Source of the DNA: Thalia democratica
Lineage: Eukaryota
DNA length: 64,000 nucleotides
Assembly: GCA_965202585.1 (NCBI GenBank)
Contig: OZ241831.1
Location: forward strand, 60,884,001-60,948,000
Reading direction: 5' to 3'
Below are positions 2,333 through 15,996 of this stretch, in pieces. The position numbers and the translations under genes were made by a program. The notes beneath the pieces are model-generated. The model made no database searches. It saw nothing but the letters and a program-made list of their open reading frames with translations, and was not told where the DNA came from. How positions within the stretch are numbered: position 1 is the first letter of the stretch; each line of letters starts with the position of its first letter.

Positions 2333-2405
2333 TGTTTCCGCCCGGGCTCGAACCGGGGACCTTTCGCGTGTTAGGCGAACGTGATAACCGCTACACTACG
2401 GAAAC
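2333..2405 (-). tRNA. tRNA-Val: tRNA-Val(AAC)
   Basis: Reverse complement GTTTCCGTAGTGTAGCGGTTATCACGTTCGCCTAACACGCGAAAGGTCCCCGGTTCGAGCCCGGGCGGAAACA; anticodon AAC. Confidence 0.96.
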
Positions 2406-3229
2406 TTGTGATAGGGTGCAGTATATTGTGTTTATATACTAATTAAGTGAGTAAGTTTGCGCTTAAAGCTTTTATGTGAAGCTTTCATAGCATCTATCAG
2501 AGATGTTAAATCGCAGAGCACAAAATCCCCGCAGTAGAATAAAAAATAAAAAGCATGGCAATAGAATTAAAATTTCTTATGAAAGCAAAAGCTGTATTTT
2601 ACAAGTTGAGAACATAAAAGTTTCATATATTCAATTACACCAACATATTTAAAAGCATATAGTTTTTATAAGTATGAATGCCTTAAATGTAAGTTTATGT
2701 TTTTTATTTTCATAAGGTTAATTTTATTCACTTTATTGTTAATTTAATCATAACTACCTTTTAACCTTGTAGTAGTAGGTAATGTTTGGTTAGAAAAGTT
2801 AAAGAAAAGTATCTTCCACTTATTTAAATGGTTAATAAACTAAAAACATTGTAGCTTTGGAACTAATCGATGTTAAATTAATTTATTATTTGATTTTTTT
2901 TTCCAAAAATTAGATGCAATAGACAAATTATTTTTTCTTATATCCTACTTTTATCAAATTATTTGAATTTTTAAACTTAAAAATAAAGTTTGATTATTAT
3001 AATTTTTTAAGATTCATTATAAATTATTTTATTAAGACATAGATTTCACTTAAAAGTAATTTGAATATAATTTATTATTTTTGTTTACAAACTTGAAACT
3101 ACTATTTGCTTAGATTAAATCTATTTAAAATTTTTAATGTGACAAATTTATTGAGTCTTTTTTTATTATAATTAGGTAGTTTATCTAAAAAAAAATATTA
3201 TACTTGAAAGTTTTAGTGTACAACTCAAG

Positions 3230-3560
3230 GTTTTTAAAACTAGTTTTGTAAATTAAGCAGAGTTGAAACAAGGTCAGGAAAAGTCAAAAAACTCAGGAAA
3301 AGCAGAAAAAAAAGATAAATAACAAGAATAGTAAGGTTTTTTTTATTAAACAGTCAGGAAGTTTGACTAAATATTAAAAAATACCAGATTTTGTCAGTTT
3401 AAATTCACTGAATTCCTTATATTCAAAAACAAGTCTTTGAATGGTAAAAAATTAATTTAAATTCTTCAAAGTGTGATTAAAATTGAAAAAACTTCCAAGA
3501 ATTTTACAAAATTACTTAATGCCTTCATCTGGTAAAATTAAATGAATATCCTTTATAAAA
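3230..3560 (+). mobile_element. Decayed MITE fragment (AGTCAGGAAA-repeat family, related to 4888-5298)
   Basis: Repeated AGTCAGGAAAA motifs; colinear similarity of 3380-3530 to 5025-5170; no intact ends. Confidence 0.5.
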
Positions 3561-4372
3561 CTGCAAAATGTTTCTATTAAAATTTTTTTAAACTATCCTA
3601 CTAGAACAAACAGTTTTTGTAAGCAGTTTGATAATCTGTAGCATTTTTTAGTAAAACAATGATAATACACATAAGTTTGTTTATCTAGCATATGTTAGAA
3701 TTGAATCGTTTTTCGTTTAAGTAAATAAATAATTTCATTCTAATTAAACACTAGGTTTAGTGTTTTGGGTAATAAGTTTATGTTTATAATTTACCTCATT
3801 ATAATTTTTTCAAAATTGTTTAAATTTTTAAAATAAATTATAAAAGAGGTGAACTTCATGGTTAAGTTTAATTATTTATAGTTTATTGTAGAATAGTTGT
3901 TTTTTAATATTTTTTACATAAATAAGGGTAAAATATTTACTACTAATTTTATAAATATTGATAAACTGAAATATAAAATTGAAGGCTTTATTAATTCCAA
4001 GTGTTTGAATATGTATTATATTATTTGTTTAAATTGATAATTTGATTTAGAAAAGTCAGGAAAATTGTAATAAAAAGTCAGGAAATTGTTTAAAGAGTGG
4101 ATAATAACTATAAAAATTCTGTACTTTGACAATTAAGGCAATTAAAACCTTAGCAAAGCTGAAATTAGATATAATTTAAAAAAAAACTACATTTTTTAAC
4201 AATAAACCTAAAAAACCTGAAATTCTTAACAAGTTTACAAAGTTGGGTAATAAAATTTAACTTGATTCAAAAATATTTCATATAAATAAGTTTTTTTTTT
4301 ATCAACAAAAAAAAATTTTTTTCATAAAACGCATTTCAATAAACTTAAGTGTTTTTCAATGGCTTATGCTAT

Positions 4373-4762
4373 CAGGGTTGCCACTTTACCTGGAAATCTG
4401 TTTTTACCTGGAAACCTGATACTTAACAACTAAGGCAAAAAAAACCTGGAATTTGAGAAATTTTTAACCAAAGACTTAGAAAAACATTCAGTTTTTAACA
4501 ATTTCAGCATGTTAAGTAGTACAATTTTAACTTGACACAAAAAAACTATCATATAAATAAGATTTCAATTAAAATTTTTTAGTTATAATACACATTTTAA
4601 TTAACTTTATAGTACATATACAATGTTTTTTTATTATTTAACACAGTTTTTTATATTAGACATAACTTTAAACTGAAAATAAACCAAAATACATGTAATT
4701 TTAAAAGCCTTGTAGAGATTTGAAAAACCAGGAAAAATTTATAAACATGAGTGGCAACCTTG
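4373..4762 (+). mobile_element. MITE with CAGGGTTGCCAC terminal inverted repeats
   Basis: CAGGGTTGCCAC...GTGGCAACCTTG; internal ACCTGGAAA repeats; similar copies at 6659 and 8309. Confidence 0.75.
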
Positions 4763-4876
4763 TACTATTCCAAACAGTTTATTACAATAAATTTAACTTT
4801 AAACTAAAGCTAGACTCTAAAATGTGTATTTTTGAAGACATTTTGAAATCATGTAAAAAATTTAAATAAAAATCAG

Positions 4877-7800
4877 GTGGCTATTCTCAGGGTTGCCACA
4901 TAGTCAGGAAAATTCAGGAAATCAGGAAAAACTAAGAAAAATGACAAAAGTCAGGAAAATTCAGGTCAAAATGGGGGGTTTTAGAAAATATTCAGGAAAA
5001 ATTCAGGAAAAAAATTTATAAAAACCTCAGATATTGTCAGTTCAAATTTATTTATTTCCTTTTATTTCAAAGCCTTCGATTAGTGAAAAATTAATTAAAA
5101 ATTCTTTAAAGTCAGACTAAAATTGCAAAATGTTATTTTAATTTTACAAAATTACTTAATTTTCAATGCCTTTTTTAGTAAAATTATAGTAAAAAGTCAG
5201 AAAAATCTTGAAAAAAGTCAGGAAAACTTTAGTAAAATGTCAGGAAAAAGTCAGGAAAAGTCAGGAAAAATTTCTCAGCTTGACTTGTGGCAACCATGCT
5301 ATTCTGTAGTAGTTAAGGTAAGTCTCTAATGGTTTTTTTTTCTTGGATTTACAAATAGTTATTAAGTTACACACTAAACACATTACTTTAGCAGTTACAT
5401 TTTCGTAGGTAACAACCGTTGAAATTATTTTAGATGAAACTCCAGACCAAGAAGATTTACCAACTTTAGATTTTCCACCACCTAAAAAGATGAGGTACCA
5501 GAAATCTTGGGAATCTGTTTATGAGTTAAAAGGTTTTTTATATCTAACAATTTGTAGTATTTAAGAATACACATTTGAGTATTTCAATTTTGATTTTAAC
5601 AACAATTTTTTTTTAATACTGAGCTTTTTTATTAAATATTATAAAGGAAAGTTCTCATGTTTTTATAGAATTAAATTAATTTTTCCATTGTAATTTTTGA
5701 AAAAAAAATAATTTTTAAATAGTTTTTAAAGTATTTTTTGTAATTTTATTTCAATAATGCACAAAAAATTTTATCATCTAAAGTCAAAAATTCCAATTCA
5801 CTTTTTACCTAAAAATTAACATTTTGTTTTAATAATTTAATAATTAACAATACTTTAGCATGACATTTTTTTTACTTTAGTACTAACCTTTGACTACTTT
5901 ATTTAAATAAATATACTTAAAATACATTTTATAATAACAACACACAAATTAAACTGTTAATTTTATTATAAAATTAAAACCAAAATTTGTTAGTATAAAA
6001 CAAAGTTCGCTTCATAGACAAAAATTGAATTTCTAATTTTATTATTTAAGTAAAATGGTTCATAGAGGCCATAAGGCGGTGAGATGGGCAAATTATTTAT
6101 TTACAACAATTTTTTGGTTTTACACCTTACAAATTATCATGATTTTTGTTTGTTAAACAAAAAAAAAAATTTTAATTTTTGTCATAAAATACATTTATTT
6201 GAATATTAAAAACATTTTTCTGACAAATGGTTTGTGGTAATATCAAGAATTCTTTATAAAATTTTTTAGTATATTGCTTTCAAATACAAAAATTAAATTT
6301 TTTTTTACTATTTTATAAACGCTAAGAAGATTAGCTTTGACTGATTTAATTACTAGACAGATCTACTTAGTTTTTTTATTTCAAAAAAGAATTATTTCAC
6401 TGCATTGATTAAATTTATATATAAATTTTTGATAAAAGTTGTGATATAAATAACAATTTTATTATAAGCAAATTTATTATCCCATTTGTAAGCTTAGATT
6501 TATAAGATAGATTTAACTAAAGCTTTTATTAATTGAGAATAAATAAATTAAAAAAAAATTGTTATTTATTGATCTTGTAGTGAAACAAAACTTTAAAAAG
6601 CACGTTTTAAAAGTAAATACATACTTAATTAGCTCAAGTTAAACTGTGATGCTTACATCAGGCTAGCCACTTTACCTGGAAGCCTATAATTTGTCAAATT
6701 AACCCAAAAAAAAACCAGGAATGTTTGTATTTTTGAAAAAAAATCGGAAAAACTTCAAATTAAAAAAAAAACTGGAAATTTTAACATTTTAAGCATTGTC
6801 AGTAGTTAAATTTTCGATTTGACACAAAAATTTATAATATAAATAATATTTTATTTCTTCATCTAAAAATTTTTTATCTACCAACACATTTATTGTAAGT
6901 TTAAAGTATCTTTTTAATGTTGTCATACTATTTAACACAGTATCTTACTTTGAACCTAATTTTCGACCAAATAAAGATTAAAATTGTGAACTTTTAAAAT
7001 TCTGTAAGAATTTTGGAATACTTTGAAAAAAATTTTAAAATACAAGGCAACACTATTACATCTATTAAACTGTTTAGTTTATTGTGAAACGTTTTTGTTA
7101 AATCATTGAAATCTCAATTGTTCACTTATTAATAAAATAAATATTAGATACACAACTTATTTATAAACAAATATTAATAGTGTTTAATGTTTTATTAGTT
7201 ATATCTGTTATGTCAACTATGTGTAATGCTGTTTTACTTATTAGATTGGATTGCTCCAACAAATTGTGAAACTAAAGCTTATTGCAAGTGGTGCAATGTA
7301 GAACTACAAGCAAAAAAGAGCAACTTAAAAGTTTATTCTTATTCTGACCGACATAAACGCGCATCTCCAGTCACAAATAACCACAACTCAATAAATCAGT
7401 TTAGGATGGAAAAATCTTTTAAACAGCAATTCAACAATTTCCTTAAAGAAAACGTACGCCAGACAGAAGTCCGGTTAGCATTGCAACAAGCTCTTCACGG
7501 GAACTTGCTAGCAGGCGAACACCAGATAGATGTCATGAAGACACTTGGGACAGCTCACGAATCAGCAACGCTTAAAAGGAGGAAAGCAAAAATTATTCTG
7601 TGCAATACTCTCGCACCAATTTGCAGAAGACTAATCATAACTGATTTTATGGTGAAGCATTGTTCTTTCTATCTGGATGAGAGTACAGATACTGCTGGAC
7701 AAAGTTTTCTAGGTAAGAAAATTACTTTTAAGCTTTGTTAATTTAATTAAGTTTAAATTTGTTATTAATTTACATACATTCTGTTGAATATAAAAATATT

Positions 7801-10800
7801 TTAATACAAAAAGCTTATTAAATTTAAATTTCAAACATGAAATAAGCTTTAAACACATTGTTCTTTGTTTTATTTTTTTAATATAGATTAATTCTTGTAA
7901 CACGTTAGCTGTAAAAGAAAATATTTTGTTATGCAATGAGTTGGACATTTTTAGATTACTCAGATGTAAGTAGGTTTAATGACAGTTAAAGGAAAAAGTT
8001 TTTATTTTACAGAATTTAATAAGTTAATAAATTAAAATTTACATAAAATTAAAGTTAGAATTACTATGATTTTTTTTAATAATTATACAGTAAACTCGTT
8101 CTAGTAAACTATGTCAGTTTCATTTCTAACATATATTTGATTTTTGTGTTGACTTTTATTTAATAGTTTAAGAAATATGTCAAAATATTGTTGATTTTAT
8201 TTTTCTAATAAGGAGAATGATTTAATTATTATAATATTTATTAAACAGCAAAAATTTTAATTAATAAAGAAAATAATGAATAAATTAGCAATTTGTTGCT
8301 TTAACGAGCAGGGTTGCCACTTCACCTAGAAACCAGGAAAAACATGGAGTTAAAATTTTAGGCATAAAAATACCTGGAATTTTGTACATAAATCTTTAAA
8401 AGACGTTAAAAAACCTGATATTTTCAATAATTTTTACTTTTATAGTAATAAAATTTGGATTTGAATAGAAAATTATACCCTATTTTTCAAAGTTTTTTGT
8501 CATCATCAATTTTTTTTATTAATGAACCATTTATAAAGCAGCTTTAGTGTAGCTTTTCCATGTTTTTATACTCTTTAATACAGTTTTAACATTAAACTTA
8601 ACTATTAACTTTAAACAGACCTTAATATGTGTAATTTTTAAAACGTGGAAGAAATTTAGAAAACCTGGAAAAAATTTTTAAAATACCGAGTGGTTAACCG
8701 GAAGCAGTTTATGTTCAAATGATTATAACAGTTTTCCTTTTATATACAGCGGTTGTAATTACAATTAAAGCTATACTTTCTTAAACTTTTGTTCTACTAC
8801 CTTCAGTTGTTTAACTAGAACAAAGTGGTAGTCCTTTAATTTCACAGATTTTATGTACTTAAAAGTTCGACTATATTTGGTATTTTTTAACTTTCTTAGA
8901 TATCTATTTAAAAAAGCATGAGTAGTAGTTACCAACAGATAATTTTAAAACATTTATATTTTTTTTTATTCCAAAGTATACAGATATAAGTTCTTTTCAT
9001 TCAAAATTTTACAGTTTTTAAACTTATAACAAAAAAATTAGAAAGCTTTATGTTTGAATCACAGGTGTTAGTATTTGTTATCTAAGCAAAATAAAGAAAA
9101 CTTCAGTATCTACATTTTTACACCTCGAAGACCTTGGAAGAGACAAATCAGCGTTATCTATTGCTAACGCATTCAAAAGAGTCTTAAAGATGTATAATGT
9201 TCACTTAAAAAATGTAGTTTCAATATGTAAGTATATATGAACTGTTACTGTTTTTTTCATTTTTGTATTCTAGTTATGTATTTATTAAATAGGTACTACT
9301 AACGTGTTTTTAATTTTAAATTTAGATATTAATAGTAAGTTAATTTTTGTTTATTTCAGCTATTCTCTGTGTATTCTTGCTAACTTTTATAAACTAGTTT
9401 TAATATCTTACAATGATCTATCTTTATTAATAGACTTAATTTAATTTTATTCAATTGTTTAAGAAAAGTATAAATTTAAGCACAAACTGGTCTTATAATT
9501 TAAGAAAAATATTTTTTTTTTTAACTTAGTAAATATATTTTTAGGTACAGACGGAGCTGTTTCCATGACAGGAGTTAAGAATGGAGTAGGACAAATTCTG
9601 AAAAAAGATAATCCCAGGCTTATAACAATATCCTGTACAAATCATGCTTTGCAAAATGCATGTTTAAATGCAACCAAAGCTACAATACCTAATGAAGTAA
9701 GTATTAAAACTATTTTATATAAATTATTAATTCAATTGTTGAATGAGAATTTTAGTAAGCTGCATTTATTCAAGTTACAAAGTTGTTTTTTTATATTTAT
9801 TTATGATAATTTATTTTATCTTATATTTATTTTTAGTATTAAAAAAAACCATTGTTGTTGAATAAAAGTGTGTATACTTTTAAATTAAATAAGGTTGAGG
9901 AGCTTATTAAGAAAACGTTCAACTACTTCAAGTTCTCTAACACAAGAAGAAGTGACTTTGAAAATTTAGGTGTGTGTATGACGGGTGAAATTCCGTTAAA
10001 ATTTAAAGCCTTAAGCAAAACTAGATGGATATCACACTTTCCATGCATTGAAAGAATTTTATTGAATTGGGAAGTACTCAAAGCTTTTTTTAATGAAGTA
10101 GGTATTAAACTATTACTATAAACTTCAAGACGCTTTAATAATTAGAAAAATTATTAGTATAAAACTTAAAACAATCCTGTTTTAAATTATTTAGCATTTT
10201 TACAATTATATTTTTACAAATATCTATAAATTTAAAATTCAATCTGCCCTGAAACTTAGTAATCATATGTTTACTAAGGTAACATTTTATTAAATCAAAT
10301 ATATAATCAGAAGATATATAATAAATGTTTAAAAGCACAAATTAATTAACATAGATTTAATAAGAATATATATCTTTTTGAACAAAACTTTCTTTGTTAA
10401 TGAGCCTTGTTTTATAAGTATTAGTGTTTATTAACTATAATGATGTTTGTTTTCGAAATTTTTATTCTTACCTATAACATTTGTTTGTATATTAGCCAGA
10501 AAGAAGAAGAAACGATTTACATGCTGAAAGTATTCGAAAAATGCTAAATAGCAATAGATTAAATTTTGTTTTTAAATTTATGGGCAAAATTTTAGAGAAA
10601 GTTAGTTTCTAAGACCTATTATCTGCTTAATAATGAATTAACACCCTAAGCACTATAACATAACTAATTTCAATCATTCTAATTTGATTTTAAATGTTTA
10701 TTTTTAATTTCTTATTTTGTAGTCATGCCAAGTTTAGCTGTAAGTATTAAATGTAAAGCAAGACTAAATTTTTACAGTGTAATAATTAATTATTTTTATT

Positions 10801-13441
10801 CATCAGGTAAATTCTGTTAATATTCTTCTACAAAAAAGTAAAGTAGAACCTTTTAAGTTTGGATTAGCAATAACAAAACTTATACAGCATCTAAAAGACC
10901 TCATTTACCAACCAAATTCAAGTAAGCTTAATTTAGATCACAAGGCAACTAAGAATAATTTTTAATTTTAGGCTATTAATAATAAAGTTTCGTTTGATTT
11001 TATATCTACAACATTTTGGCGTAAATAAATATTATTTTTTAATTAGTAACGCAAACAAACGTACAATAACGTTCTTATAACAAAACATTACTAACATTTT
11101 GTTAAAGGTTTAGTAGATTCAAATTTAGATTGGATTTTATACAGAGTAAACGATATGAGTAATTAGTATCAATATTTTATTTTTTTACCAAATTAATTGT
11201 TAAATTATTATTTTACTATATAAACTAAGTTGTAGTTACTAAAATTTACATTTTTTTGTAGCTAACCTTTTGGAAGAACCTATCTTTCATGTAGAAGTAA
11301 ACGAAGTTTATGCAAATTTATCCATTAGTAAGAAGGCAGAGGTTAAACTAATTAAAATTCACGTTGTTTAGTCAATTGGGTTTATTAACAACTAAACTTA
11401 ATTGATTTTTTTAAAAAGGATTTGTTTAATGAGAATAATTTCTGAAATTGTTTTTACTTTACTTGAAAAAATTTTAAGTCAAAATACAAGTTATTATAAT
11501 AACTGTGTTTTTTTTTTACATAATCGTTTTTTTTTTTCAGTAAATTCTCATACTTTACTTAAGTAATTTACTTAATGTTGTGTATTACACGTGAAAAAAT
11601 TTCTGTTAATGACACGCTACGGTTCTAATCTGTAACTAATTTTCCTATAATTCCAACATTTTTATAATTAATTGTTTTAATACAGGTAAAAAATATTTTT
11701 CAAAGTTTTGTTGTAGTGTTTATAATTGAATTGGAAAAAAGAATGCTGCAAAATCTTGAATTTATGGCTCAGTATGAAGTTGTAAACGATGTTAGTTGGT
11801 ATTAAATATATCTTAAAAAATAAAATAACTTATTTAAATATCATTAAAACTTATAATTTTTTAAAGGCCTTAAATAGACGGATGCCGGATATTGAGAAGT
11901 TTTTAGAACATCCAAAAATTAAAAAAGTGTTTGAAGGAAACCACAGAGATACTATCTCACTTCAATACAAAAGTTTGCATGGACGTCATCAAACAAGTAT
12001 CGGTTAGCTAAAGGAAAATAACAATAGTAACGTACTACTTAAATATAAATTAAAATTTTCAGTGTTAATGTTAAACAAGTTTTGTAATTTAGTAAACATT
12101 GTAAATCTACCGAAAACTAAGTTCTGATAAAATAAAAACATGATTTATTATTGTAAGAGTACACTTACAATTGATTATGTACATAAAAAGTTATCAGTTT
12201 ATTCTTAACAGATAAATCAACAAACGTTAACTTTTGGAGCAGTGTTCGCGTTGAATACCAAGAACTTAAGGAGTTAATGATGAAACTACAAACGATACCT
12301 TTTAGTAACGCGCAAATCGAGCGAGACTTTTCCTTGATGAATATCTCGAAAAACAATAGACAATCTAATATGGGCCATATTTTGTTAAACTCCTTAATGA
12401 TTATTAGGTAAGTAAAAATTTAATGTATTTGGATTTATGTATTTTTATTTTAAACTATTTATTTCATAGAAATGAAATTTTAATGTGTTATTTAAACTGT
12501 AAAGTTTTTAATCATTATTTAAATTATTTAATTTTAGTTAAAGTTGGGTATGCAACTCGATGACCGAGAGGTCTTTTTGTGTACCCGGATCCTTGAAACA
12601 AGAAATTTTTGAATTTTGTTTTGTTATTATTCAACAAACCTTATCATTTTGATTTTTACTTTTAAAAAACATATTTTATTATAGGAGACATAAAGGCCCT
12701 ATTAATAACTTGTTTTTTTTAATGTAATCCAATTAAATTGATATTTTGTATTACAACGATTTGTTTTATATAATTTTTTTTCTTTTATTTTAAATATAAG
12801 GGAAGAATAAATGCATAATAAGAATTGAAAAATTTTTTTGCTAAATTTATCGGTATATTATCAGTAAAATTCAATGATATATATCACTAGTAAAAGTTAC
12901 TAGAACTTTTTTAACAAATTTTAGTTTAGGTAGTTTTTTAAATTTTTTATTCTAATTAAAACTATTTGTACAAGGTTAAAAAGCTTGGCATTTGCTTATT
13001 ATTTAAATATTATATAGGTTGTTGTCTTTTTAGATAAAGTAAAGTATAGTGTTAATCTGTTTGTTGAATATTTTTATCATAAATATAATATTGGTAAAGT
13101 ACAAAATTATAACTCAATGTATGGTTTATAAATTACTCTTTTTTATTCAAAGGTTCAATTCAAACATTAGTAATAAAAAATTCCTACAATTACTTTTTAC
13201 ATTCTTAAGCCAATTATTACCCAAAATTATAATAAATTCTATTTTTCTCAGATCAACCTGCAAAAGAATGGAGTTATGCTGTGACAAATTTCCACTTTCA
13301 GATACATTGATAGAAGAAGTTGGTAAGTCTAGTTTGTACAAACCAAGAAGCCAAGATGTCAATGAAATCTTGACAAACGAAGAGTACAGCAAATTTAAAC
13401 CTTCAAATTTGACAATGTTTGCAGCAAACAATGTAATATAA
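4877..13441 (+). CDS. hAT-family transposase (ZNF862/TTF-zinc-finger-like type), multi-exon; 5' end not located
   Basis: Phase-consistent GT-AG exons: [4877-4887 + 5306-5317, split by a MITE], 5409-5532, 7245-7712, 9065-9226, 9545-9696, 9894-10097, 10496-10600 (alternative junction 10101/10500), 10807-10921, 11262-11341, 11686-11790, 11867-12002, 12212-12407, 13252-13441; about 685 aa. Motifs: YQKSW..Y..W..C-x2-C zinc finger, LDESTD (D1), CTDGAVSMTG (D2), CTNH, SKTRW, and C-terminal dimerisation domain FWS...IPFSNAQIERDFS (E). Confidence 0.88.
4888..5298 (+). mobile_element. MITE with CAGGGTTGCCAC TIRs, inserted in a putative transposase micro-exon
   Basis: CAGGGTTGCCAC...GTGGCAACCATG flanked by the direct repeat CTATTCT (7 bp; 8 bp GCTATTCT if the terminal G is counted as target); many TCAGGAAAA repeats. 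Confidence 0.8.
6659..7055 (+). mobile_element. Diverged CAGGGTTGCCAC-family MITE in a transposase intron
   Basis: CAGGCTAGCCACTTTACCTGGAA...AAGGCAACACTA; colinear with 4373-4762; TTACAT on both sides. Confidence 0.6.
8309..8702 (+). mobile_element. CAGGGTTGCCAC-family MITE in a transposase intron
   Basis: CAGGGTTGCCACTTCACCTAGAAACCAGG...GAGTGGTTAACCG; colinear with 4373-4762. Confidence 0.65.
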
Positions 13442-15253
13442 AATTTCAACAAAATTTTTGCGTGTTAAAAAGCAGTTAATTTTTTTCAAAAAAAAAATGC
13501 TTTTCATTTAAAGTCAATTCACTATTTTAAAAACACTTTTACTTGAGTGACTGTTAAAGCATTCTACTGTTTAAATTTGTTGTGACTGTATTTTATTCAA
13601 AAATTTCAAATTTGTTTATTTACAAAGTTTTGTACATTAATTGCTAAAATTTCTTAGACTATTTGTACTTTTTTACATTTTTTGTAGTAACAATAATAAG
13701 TTCAATAATAATCCAACCGTTAATCGCGCTAATTTTTTATCATATGAGTATTATGCTAAATTTCTTTTGCCTTACAAACTTTAAAATTTGTCATTTTCTT
13801 AGTTTTTATTAAGTATTTTTTAATACTTTAAATTGTTATTTTAAATTTCCGTATTAACTTTTGTATTTTTTAAAATTTTTATTTAAAATTTTAGGTTTTT
13901 AAACAAAACATTTTTACTTCAAATCAGCTTTTTTTTTAAACAATTTTCTTTATTTACCAATATAGATTTTTTTAATTGCCATAACTGCTAGTTATTGCGA
14001 TACAAATTAGTTTAAGTCATAGTGCTGTAAACTGCCCTTATGTTATGCACTTGTTCTTTTATTAATAAACATATAAAATTAATCCAAGCTCTTTATATAT
14101 ATATCAAAAAAGTATGTAGAGTATATAGCTTGTATTAGTATAATATTTTGTAGTTTCGAAGGTTTGTATAATTTTTTTAATTACAATATAACCTAGTTTT
14201 TATTTTTTCACAAACTTTGAAACTTGAATTAAATGAATAAACCTAGAAGTACATAAGCAACTTACAAAAATAAATTTCTTTTTAGTTAACTATACTTACA
14301 AATTAAACATTGAAAATGGTTTAAAACTTAAAGATAAATGAAATAAGTAATACTAGTAACCTTTTAGATTTTTTTTCTCTTAAATAAAGTTTTATTTTAT
14401 GAAACAGTTAAAGTAGTTTAACATGAATTCCTTTAAATGTACAATTTCAGTCTTTGCTTTATATCATAGTCATTATTATCTAATAAAATATCTTTTCACT
14501 AAGTTAACATTTTTAGCTGCGAATATTCTTACTGCAAAAGCTTTAGTATAATTAGATTGTTATAAAACTTATAGCAGAAAATATTTTTAATTTAGTTTAA
14601 AAAAGTAAATTAAGCTTAAATCTTTAACAAACCAGTTAAACTGACCTTATTTTTTTTCATTTAATAAAAATTTAAGGTATATAAACAAATAAATTTTTGA
14701 TAAAAATTTTCATAAAAAAAAAAATTGTTAAAATAAGTAAGTAAATTGTAAATTAAACACTTATGTAGTTTTTCACTTTAATAAAATTTTTGCAGGAACA
14801 AAAAAAAAATTTGACTTTAAGAAATATAAGACAAGACGTGAAAGTTAGTTAAAACTTAAAAAATTAACATGCATTATTAAAGTTTTAAAATTAAGTGAAT
14901 TACTTAAGCGTACGATTTTGGCTTATAAATTTCTTTTTTCTTCTAGCTCTCTCACTTTTGGGCTAAAACTTTGCGTCTATTTGTAAAGTTCTTAAATGAA
15001 GAGAATAACTCGAGCGCGCTCCAGCGTACCACTCACTTTTCACTTTAGTTTCTTTTATTTCTCCAAATTTCTCTCAATTTACTATAGAGCTTTAAAGCGC
15101 GTGTTTACAATTAAAACAGCTGTATTTAACTGCCATCTTGACTATACCATGTCTGGCATCTATCATGGTAAATCGTGTTTTGTTTGCATATCTGCAGAAT
15201 AAAAATTAAGCATTAAAAAAACTCAGTGTTTTGAAGTGTTTATATATATATAT

Positions 15254-15810: not shown

Positions 15811-15996
15811 ATATATATATATATATCAACACTTCAAAATAATTAGTTTTTTAAATGCTTAATTTTTATTCTGCAGATATGCAAACAAAACTCAATTTAC
15901 CATGATAGATGCTATGTAAGCTTCACATAAAAGCTCTAAGCACAAACTTACTCACTTAATCAGTTTATAAACACAATATACTGCACCCTATCACAA

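Follow-up and report, generated by a model that had tools for sequence, protein, structure and literature searches.

The locus and the boundaries of the element

We analysed 64,000 nucleotides of the genome of Thalia democratica (GenBank assembly GCA_965202585.1, contig OZ241831.1, positions 60,884,001 to 60,948,000 of the forward strand; hereafter the window), in which a transposase gene of the hAT superfamily lies inside a unit of 12.7 kb that is bounded by terminal inverted repeats (TIRs) and flanked by a target site duplication (TSD). The window sits on a chromosome of 67.7 Mb in an assembly of 802 Mb, is strongly AT-rich (G+C about 24%) and carries 27 clustered tRNA genes that are arranged as nested duplications and palindromes. 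The coordinates of the element, its exons (labelled E-1 to E11) and the related target sites are collected in Table 1.

The first base of the element is C2498 (CAGAGATG...) and the last is G15155 (...CCATGTCTG). The TIR of 13 bp is imperfect, with 10/13 bases identical between CAGAGATGTTAAA and CAGACATGGTATA. An earlier note on this DNA had claimed a mobile hAT element of 12.7 kb at 2498-15155 with TIRs, a perfect 8-bp TSD and an empty site in the mirror arm, which had moved as a unit after the outer duplication. All of this is borne out: GCATCTAT stands on both flanks, and the duplicated tRNA units hold two uninterrupted empty sites, one of them (15905-15912) in inverted orientation. As two copies of the tRNA-Val unit keep GCATCTAT uninterrupted, the insertion is later than the duplication of that unit. 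A search of the element for subterminal motifs gave only a weak candidate, AAAGTGA, which occurs four times.

Table 1. Features of the hAT element, its transposase gene and its target sites in the window.
Feature	Position	Strand	Basis
Left TSD copy, GCATCTAT	2490..2497	.	flank sequence
Whole hAT element, 12,658 bp	2498..15155	+	TSD, empty sites, 20 other copies
5' TIR, CAGAGATGTTAAA	2498..2510	+	agrees at 10/13 bases with the inverted 3' end
E-1, coding part of the first exon: ATG and 4 codons (MNALN), donor GTAAGTTT	2674..2688	+	predicted from the sister family
E0, acidic stretch and conserved N-terminal motif ..YQKSWESVYELK; starts in phase 0, ends in phase 1	5409..5532	+	N-termini of homologues, P0113
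E1, zinc finger C-x2-C-x13-(H>Y here)-x5-H and first catalytic Asp (DESTD)	7245..7712	+	donor from RNA contigs, acceptor predicted
High-copy short repeat, nested between E1 and E2	8300..8690	.	2,964 first-look candidates in the genome
E2, in-frame exon of 162 nt that some transcripts skip	9065..9226	+	joints of RNA contigs; present in P0098, absent from P0113
E3, second catalytic Asp (TDGA) and CxxH	9545..9696	+	RNA contigs, translation
E4, TRW motif	9894..10097	+	RNA contigs, translation
E5	10496..10600	+	RNA contigs, translation
E6	10807..10921	+	RNA contigs, translation
E7	11262..11341	+	joint reported as 11337>11682; moved by 4 bases it is GT..AG, and the diverged contig then differs at one base
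E8	11686..11790	+	RNA contigs, translation
E9	11867..12002	+	RNA contigs, translation
E10, hAT dimerisation domain and catalytic Glu (ERDFS)	12212..12407	+	PF05699 match, RNA contigs
E11, last coding exon, stop codon included	13252..13441	+	tblastn, RNA contigs, translation
3' TIR (...TATACCATGTCTG)	15143..15155	-	inverted match to the 5' end
Right TSD copy, GCATCTAT	15156..15163	.	flank sequence
Second empty target site	15905..15912	-	same flanks, single GCATCTAT, reverse complement
Empty target site in the duplicated tRNA-Val unit	33152..33159	+	same flanks, single GCATCTAT

Copies in the genome and evidence of mobility

Both termini were matched to the genome, a check that the earlier note had proposed, and other copies with different TSDs were recovered. 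With 300 bp of the 5' end as a query, 40 scored genome matches were obtained at 98-100% identity out of 278 first-look candidates, and the corresponding 300 bp of the 3' end gave the same number in the same range of identity, from 159 candidates. A genome search with the E4 peptide found about 48 copies at an amino acid identity of at least 93%, and copies that bear transposase exons number about 48-55 in the genome, copies of the ends being more numerous. The copies are spread over all large chromosomes. Ten further full-length copies measure 12,651-13,032 bp and share 98.1-98.7% nucleotide identity with the window copy, the divergence among copies being 1.3-1.9%.

TSDs were compared in 21 copies, namely the window copy, the ten full-length copies and ten others examined at their ends. 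They are perfect, 8 bp long and mutually different in 19 of these, and the remaining two have damaged junctions. Given that the copies are near-identical and their TSDs perfect and distinct, the family has spread recently by transposition. Four of the ten end-examined copies are internally deleted, with lengths of 8.0-10.1 kb, and carry TSDs; the deleted copies were thus mobilised too, in trans. The TSDs show a base bias in this small sample, with T at position 2 in 13/19 and A at position 7 in 11/19, and have no central TA. The Ac-type target consensus is reportedly nTnnnnAn and the Buster-type consensus is nnnTAnnn, so that the few TSDs at hand suggest a target preference that is Ac-like rather than Buster-like.

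These copies also bear on the idea that the gene is a domesticated, hAT-derived host gene that merely happens to be flanked by two unrelated repeats, or that a transposon has captured. Its intron-rich layout does resemble that of a host gene, but the unit of 12.7 kb is present as a whole, together with the gene, in about 50 places, where it has TIRs of its own and differing TSDs. The empty sites lack the entire unit, and between the coding ends of the gene and the element's termini there are only 177 bp on the 5' side and 1.7 kb on the 3' side. We therefore regard a host gene as a most improbable explanation.

Several further observations concern individual copies. The window copy lacks 25 bp at about position 4111, in the first intron, that are present in the ten other full-length copies. 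Four copies within 0.7 Mb (G000:C1:96.66-97.32 Mb) have identical features in E4, including the same nearby TAA, and look as if they were carried by a local segmental duplication rather than being separate insertions. The window copy was inserted 85 bp from a tRNA-Val gene (window 2333-2405), and another copy (G000:C6:12099308-12112103) lies inside tRNA-Asp-like sequence, where its TSD is imperfect. These two tRNA-associated insertions may point to a bias towards tRNA genes or tRNA-derived repeats, or may be due to chance.

Structure and splicing of the transposase gene

The largest open reading frame (ORF) of the element (7226-7741) aligns with the first 150-180 residues of hAT proteins that are 634-709 amino acids long and combine DUF4371 with Dimer_Tnp_hAT, and tblastn with those proteins gave collinear pieces over 7.2-13.4 kb. 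The full model has 13 exons, 12 GT..AG introns and a coding sequence (CDS) of 2052 nt for 683 amino acids, and spans 10.8 kb. In the window copy the frame is open and the splice sites are canonical in 24/24 cases. The expectation of 13 exons and at least 12 introns joined in consistent phase into a protein of about 685 amino acids was therefore accurate.

RNA evidence comes from marine metatranscriptome contigs, which hold no information on strand or level and whose alignment covered window 7450-13445. Two of them, one in run X2 (1,569 nt) and one in run X3 (1,595 nt), come from separate samples of the same study and cover ten joints: 7710>9063, 9226>9545, 9692>9894, 10097>10496, 10600>10807, 10921>11262, 11337>11682, 11790>11867, 12001>12211 and 12405>13250. 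After small register shifts all ten introns are GT..AG, the phases agree and no stops occur in the exons; two joints needed a shift of 4 bases owing to the identity of about 97% between the contigs and the window copy. Also, a database protein of 282 amino acids (P0098), which includes E2, is a partly spliced product of the window family. The RNA junctions called for by the earlier note were thus found for ten introns in contigs of this family, and for the other two in P0113, the transcript product of a sister family that is described below.

RNA libraries can contain DNA, and with contigs that carry neither strand nor level information it might be argued that the joints derive from deleted or processed DNA copies and not from RNA splicing. 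A genome search with the spliced product, however, returned only exon-sized pieces and no contiguous processed copy, and the joints therefore reflect RNA splicing. The ten gaps are, moreover, all GT..AG and keep the frame, and families with introns too diverged to be aligned still share the splice positions. With this evidence, a DNA origin of the joints has next to no probability.

The start of the gene was placed by comparison. A first model that began at the ATG at 7226 (643 amino acids) was dropped, because the N-termini of homologues and the paralogues place the acceptor at 7243-7244 and add two more exons. In homologues from outside this genome, an N-terminal motif of the form ..W..x..F/L-K-D/G-W-L/I.. 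stands directly before the zinc finger. The first half of this motif (MRYQKSWESVYELK) is found at 5490-5531 with GT after it, and its second half (D-WIAP...) starts at 7245, preceded by a pyrimidine tract and AG (7243-7244). The same K|D-W junction, in phase 1 and with AG directly before it, is present in 8/8 paralogous loci examined. P0113, a transcript-derived protein of a sister family from a marine eukaryote catalogue, reads MNQNNH|VPLIEII..KSWETVFELK|DWIAP.., and thereby documents both upstream junctions of that family at the level of RNA. Its loci have a tiny first coding exon, MDQNNH, with GTAAGTTT after it; GTAAGTTT likewise follows MNALN in the window. Upstream of M5490 the frame stays open back to an AG at 5407-5408, and VTTVEIILDE of the window resembles VPLVEIIVDD of the sister family.

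The possibility of a second gene in the element was weakly rejected, as only short ORFs and no other conserved coding segment were seen. When the 5' 4.7 kb were compared by tblastx with the upstream regions of the paralogues, E0 was the only conserved coding segment and the other matches were nested repeats.

The transposase and its predicted mode of action

The exon translations contain DESTD, TDGA, SCTNH (the CxxH motif), TRW and ERDFS, and the catalytic residues and signature motifs are accordingly intact, as the earlier note had proposed. Pfam scans were run on single-exon peptides and on natural database proteins. Raw ORF pieces gave only sub-threshold Pfam matches, while cutting at the exon borders gave a significant match of the E10 peptide to PF05699, the hAT dimerisation domain (23.6 bits, cut-off 21.4, E 4.5e-5). 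Of the two domains for which a Pfam search had been suggested, the dimerisation domain was therefore recovered and the TTF zinc finger was not, since none of the zinc-finger models (zf-BED / TTF) matched E1. Among relatives, the finger motif C-x2-C-x13-H-x5-H hardly varies.

In an alignment of relatives (A1) the columns of the two Asp residues, C..H and RW are invariant or nearly so, and among all solved structures the A1 profile matched Hermes transposase alone (E 3.4e-14). A DDE core of the RNase-H-like type with CxxH and RW signatures is thus predicted for the protein, and with it a capacity for catalysis. No full-length spliced product of the window family was present among the 120 matches listed from the alignment A1 search.

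Taken together, these features are consistent with an element that is, over nearly its whole length, one gene. Transcription would start within about 170 bp of the 5' end, at a predicted promoter position, and the host would splice a pre-mRNA of about 10.8 kb at 12 GT..AG introns into the CDS of 2.05 kb for the transposase of 683 amino acids. This protein would comprise an N-terminal C2H2-type finger, a DDE RNase-H-like core with an insertion domain and a C-terminal hAT dimerisation domain. On the model of Hermes and Ac, it would bind the ends of the element, excise it and reinsert it with an 8-bp staggered cut, from which the TSD would result.

It may be asked whether the family, although real, is non-autonomous, either as a whole or in the window copy, with relics mobilised in trans by another hAT element and the open frame of the window copy a chance survival at a divergence of about 1.5%. 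Stops, frameshifts or damaged splice sites are found in 7/11 full-length copies, the window copy is changed at a zinc ligand (H77Y), and from the TSDs around the deletion derivatives of 8-10 kb it is clear that elements can be mobilised in trans. On the other side, 3-4 of the 11 full-length copies are intact: they retain a frame of 2 kb across the 13 exons, and none of their 24 splice sites departs from the canonical form. Wild samples have also yielded spliced transcripts of the family, and the copies have diverged by no more than 1.3-1.9%. We consider a non-autonomous family or window copy unlikely on this evidence.

We contend that window 2498-15155 is, with high probability, one copy of a young, moderately abundant and autonomous-type family of hAT DNA transposons. 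The element belongs to a known superfamily with a known mode of action, and what is unusual is its architecture, with 12.7 kb and 12 introns. Several points weigh against this interpretation. At about 97% identity to the window copy, the RNA contigs derive either from different copies of the family or from a population that is related. The two upstream introns are predicted in the window family from the transcript product of a sister family and from conserved splice sites. Catalytic activity is assigned to the transposase by analogy, and its place within a subgroup of hAT proteins is qualified by the score of P0098 against DUF4371 (PF14291), 17.6 bits at a cut-off of 32.1, where outside homologues pass or approach that cut-off. 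Finally, the window copy has six private amino acid changes, among them H77Y (codon 77, window 7334-7336), which replaces the first His of C-x2-C-x13-H-x5-H, a predicted zinc ligand, in the window copy alone; this copy may itself encode a weakened protein with poor DNA binding.

Introns, nested repeats and skipping of E2

The introns add up to 8.7 kb against a CDS of 2.05 kb. Introns 1, 2 and 3 measure 2.7, 1.7 and 1.35 kb, respectively, and all of them carry pieces of one short repeat. Pieces related to the repeat of Table 1 are found at about 4190-4870 and at 6777-7058, in the two upstream introns, and also at 12527-12600. Because these pieces are common to all copies of the family, they were acquired before the family amplified. 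The large size of the element is due to its introns with nested short repeats. The repeat at 8300-8690 has a very high depth of metatranscriptome contigs with loose ends. It looks like a short interspersed element (SINE) or a miniature inverted-repeat transposable element (MITE) that is abundant in host transcripts.

Alternative splicing affects E2. A joint from E1 to E3 (7709>9542) is present in contigs of two runs and E2 is included in another contig; the same skip is seen in P0113 (..SFLG|TDGA..), which derives from a sister family with about 50% protein identity. Since E2 has 162 nt, its skipping leaves the frame intact and costs the protein the 54 residues that lie between its first and second catalytic Asp. 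The skipped form would probably be unable to form the catalytic fold, and it would retain the DNA-binding and dimerisation parts. The repressor of the P element arises by intron retention, and on this analogy it is a tentative and rather doubtful suggestion that the E2-skipped form could be a conserved inhibitor of transposition made by splicing. If so, the elements would regulate themselves via host splicing. On this reading the introns may do more than take up space; their 12 positions were kept in a whole clade of mobile families while the proteins diverged to about 32-66% identity.

Sister families with the same intron plan

Further groups that the E4 peptide detected in the genome have identities of 62-66%, 47-54% and about 32%, and in all of them the match comprises exactly residues 1-68. 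At least four diverged hAT families in the genome (32-66% amino acid identity) have common intron positions, and eight paralogous loci match the window gene exon by exon with the same borders. When the exon ends of the window gene were projected onto the paralogous loci, the acceptor was AG in 58/64 cases and the donor GT in 57/65, and in the two closest families the projected sites were AG in 10/10 and GT in 10/10; the chance of a given dinucleotide at a fixed place was estimated at about 5% in DNA of such composition. The upstream non-coding sequence of the paralogues no longer aligns with that of the window except in nested repeats, and intron lengths differ. The two most distant paralogous loci have an extra split inside E1. 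Further diverged families were noted at the loci L021, L024/L027 and L025/L026, the last two of which carry this extra split.

Another of the sister families, with about 52% identity, is bounded too: it measures about 9.2 kb and has a perfect TIR of 11 bp (CAGACTTGTCA) and the same plan of 13 exons. Its copies at G000:C2:5.92 Mb, C5:12.34 Mb and C9:39.02 Mb have different flanks in each case; a perfect 8-bp duplication is seen in one of the three copies examined and the other two have slightly damaged junctions. Since a second bounded family shares the plan, the intron-rich layout was inherited within a lineage of mobile elements. The plan is thus ancestral to a clade of hAT families in the Thalia democratica genome and is not peculiar to the window copy.

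A separate observation concerns the mitochondrial genome of the host. In COX1 (G000:C1833:6815-11131) TGA is a sense codon, and the protein has about 50% identity to the best named COX1 and is 86-91% identical to proteins of the marine catalogue. This divergence indicates that the mitochondrial genome of the host is very fast-evolving.

Comparison with known hAT systems

The element resembles Ac, hobo and Hermes in its 8-bp TSD, its short TIRs that start with CAGAG/CAGAC, its predicted DDE core with CxxH and RW, and its dimerisation domain. It differs from them in its length of 12.7 kb and its 12 introns, and the similarity to Hermes is seen at the profile level only. Hermes and hobo are not known to have introns, and Ac has four.

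The hAT elements described so far are typically 2.5-5 kb long, with TIRs of 10-25 bp and 8-bp duplications (PMC3942097). BuT2 of Drosophila buzzatii, a member of the Tip group, is an autonomous element of 2.8 kb that with its five exons already counts there as multi-exon; it has a transposase of 643 amino acids and deletion derivatives with TSDs (PMC3942097). The window element is likewise an autonomous-type multi-exon hAT element with such derivatives, but its 13 exons extend over 10.8 kb, in contrast to the five exons and 2.8 kb of BuT2. Measured against the norm of 2.5-5 kb and the four introns of BuT2 (PMC3942097), the claim of an unusual size and intron number therefore stands. In the literature searched, no comparably intron-rich or large hAT element is described, which is not proof of absence.

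The closest named relatives are DUF4371 hAT proteins annotated as 'uncharacterised' or 'ZNF862-like', with 26-40% identity (e.g., Photinus pyralis XP_031328721), from insects, crustaceans, fishes and amphibians. The transposase shares with the ZNF862-like proteins a length of about 650-690 amino acids, the N-terminal W..F/LK-D/G-W-L motif, the C-x2-C-x13-H-x5-H finger and Dimer_Tnp_hAT, which in those proteins is combined with DUF4371. Many of these proteins differ, however, in being encoded by uninterrupted ORFs on contigs of 2.2-3.5 kb, and thus appear compact or intron-poor, although such contigs may be transcripts. A domesticated hAT gene would be expected as a single copy with neither TIRs nor a TSD, whereas the window element has about 50 copies with TIRs and TSDs.

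Significance of an intron-rich transposon

As a rule, cut-and-paste transposons are small and contain few introns or none, which is usually tied to expression in new hosts and to efficient replication. The family described here depends on 12 correct splicing events for its enzyme and has nevertheless reached about 50 or more sites in recent time. The exon plan, kept in several diverged mobile families, points to a long vertical residence in one intron-rich host lineage. Such families offer a natural system in which the effect of intron load, nested repeats and alternative splicing on the fitness of transposons could be studied, as well as the path from transposons to host genes. Gene prediction programs will call these elements host genes, which matters for the annotation of the present genome and of related plankton genomes.

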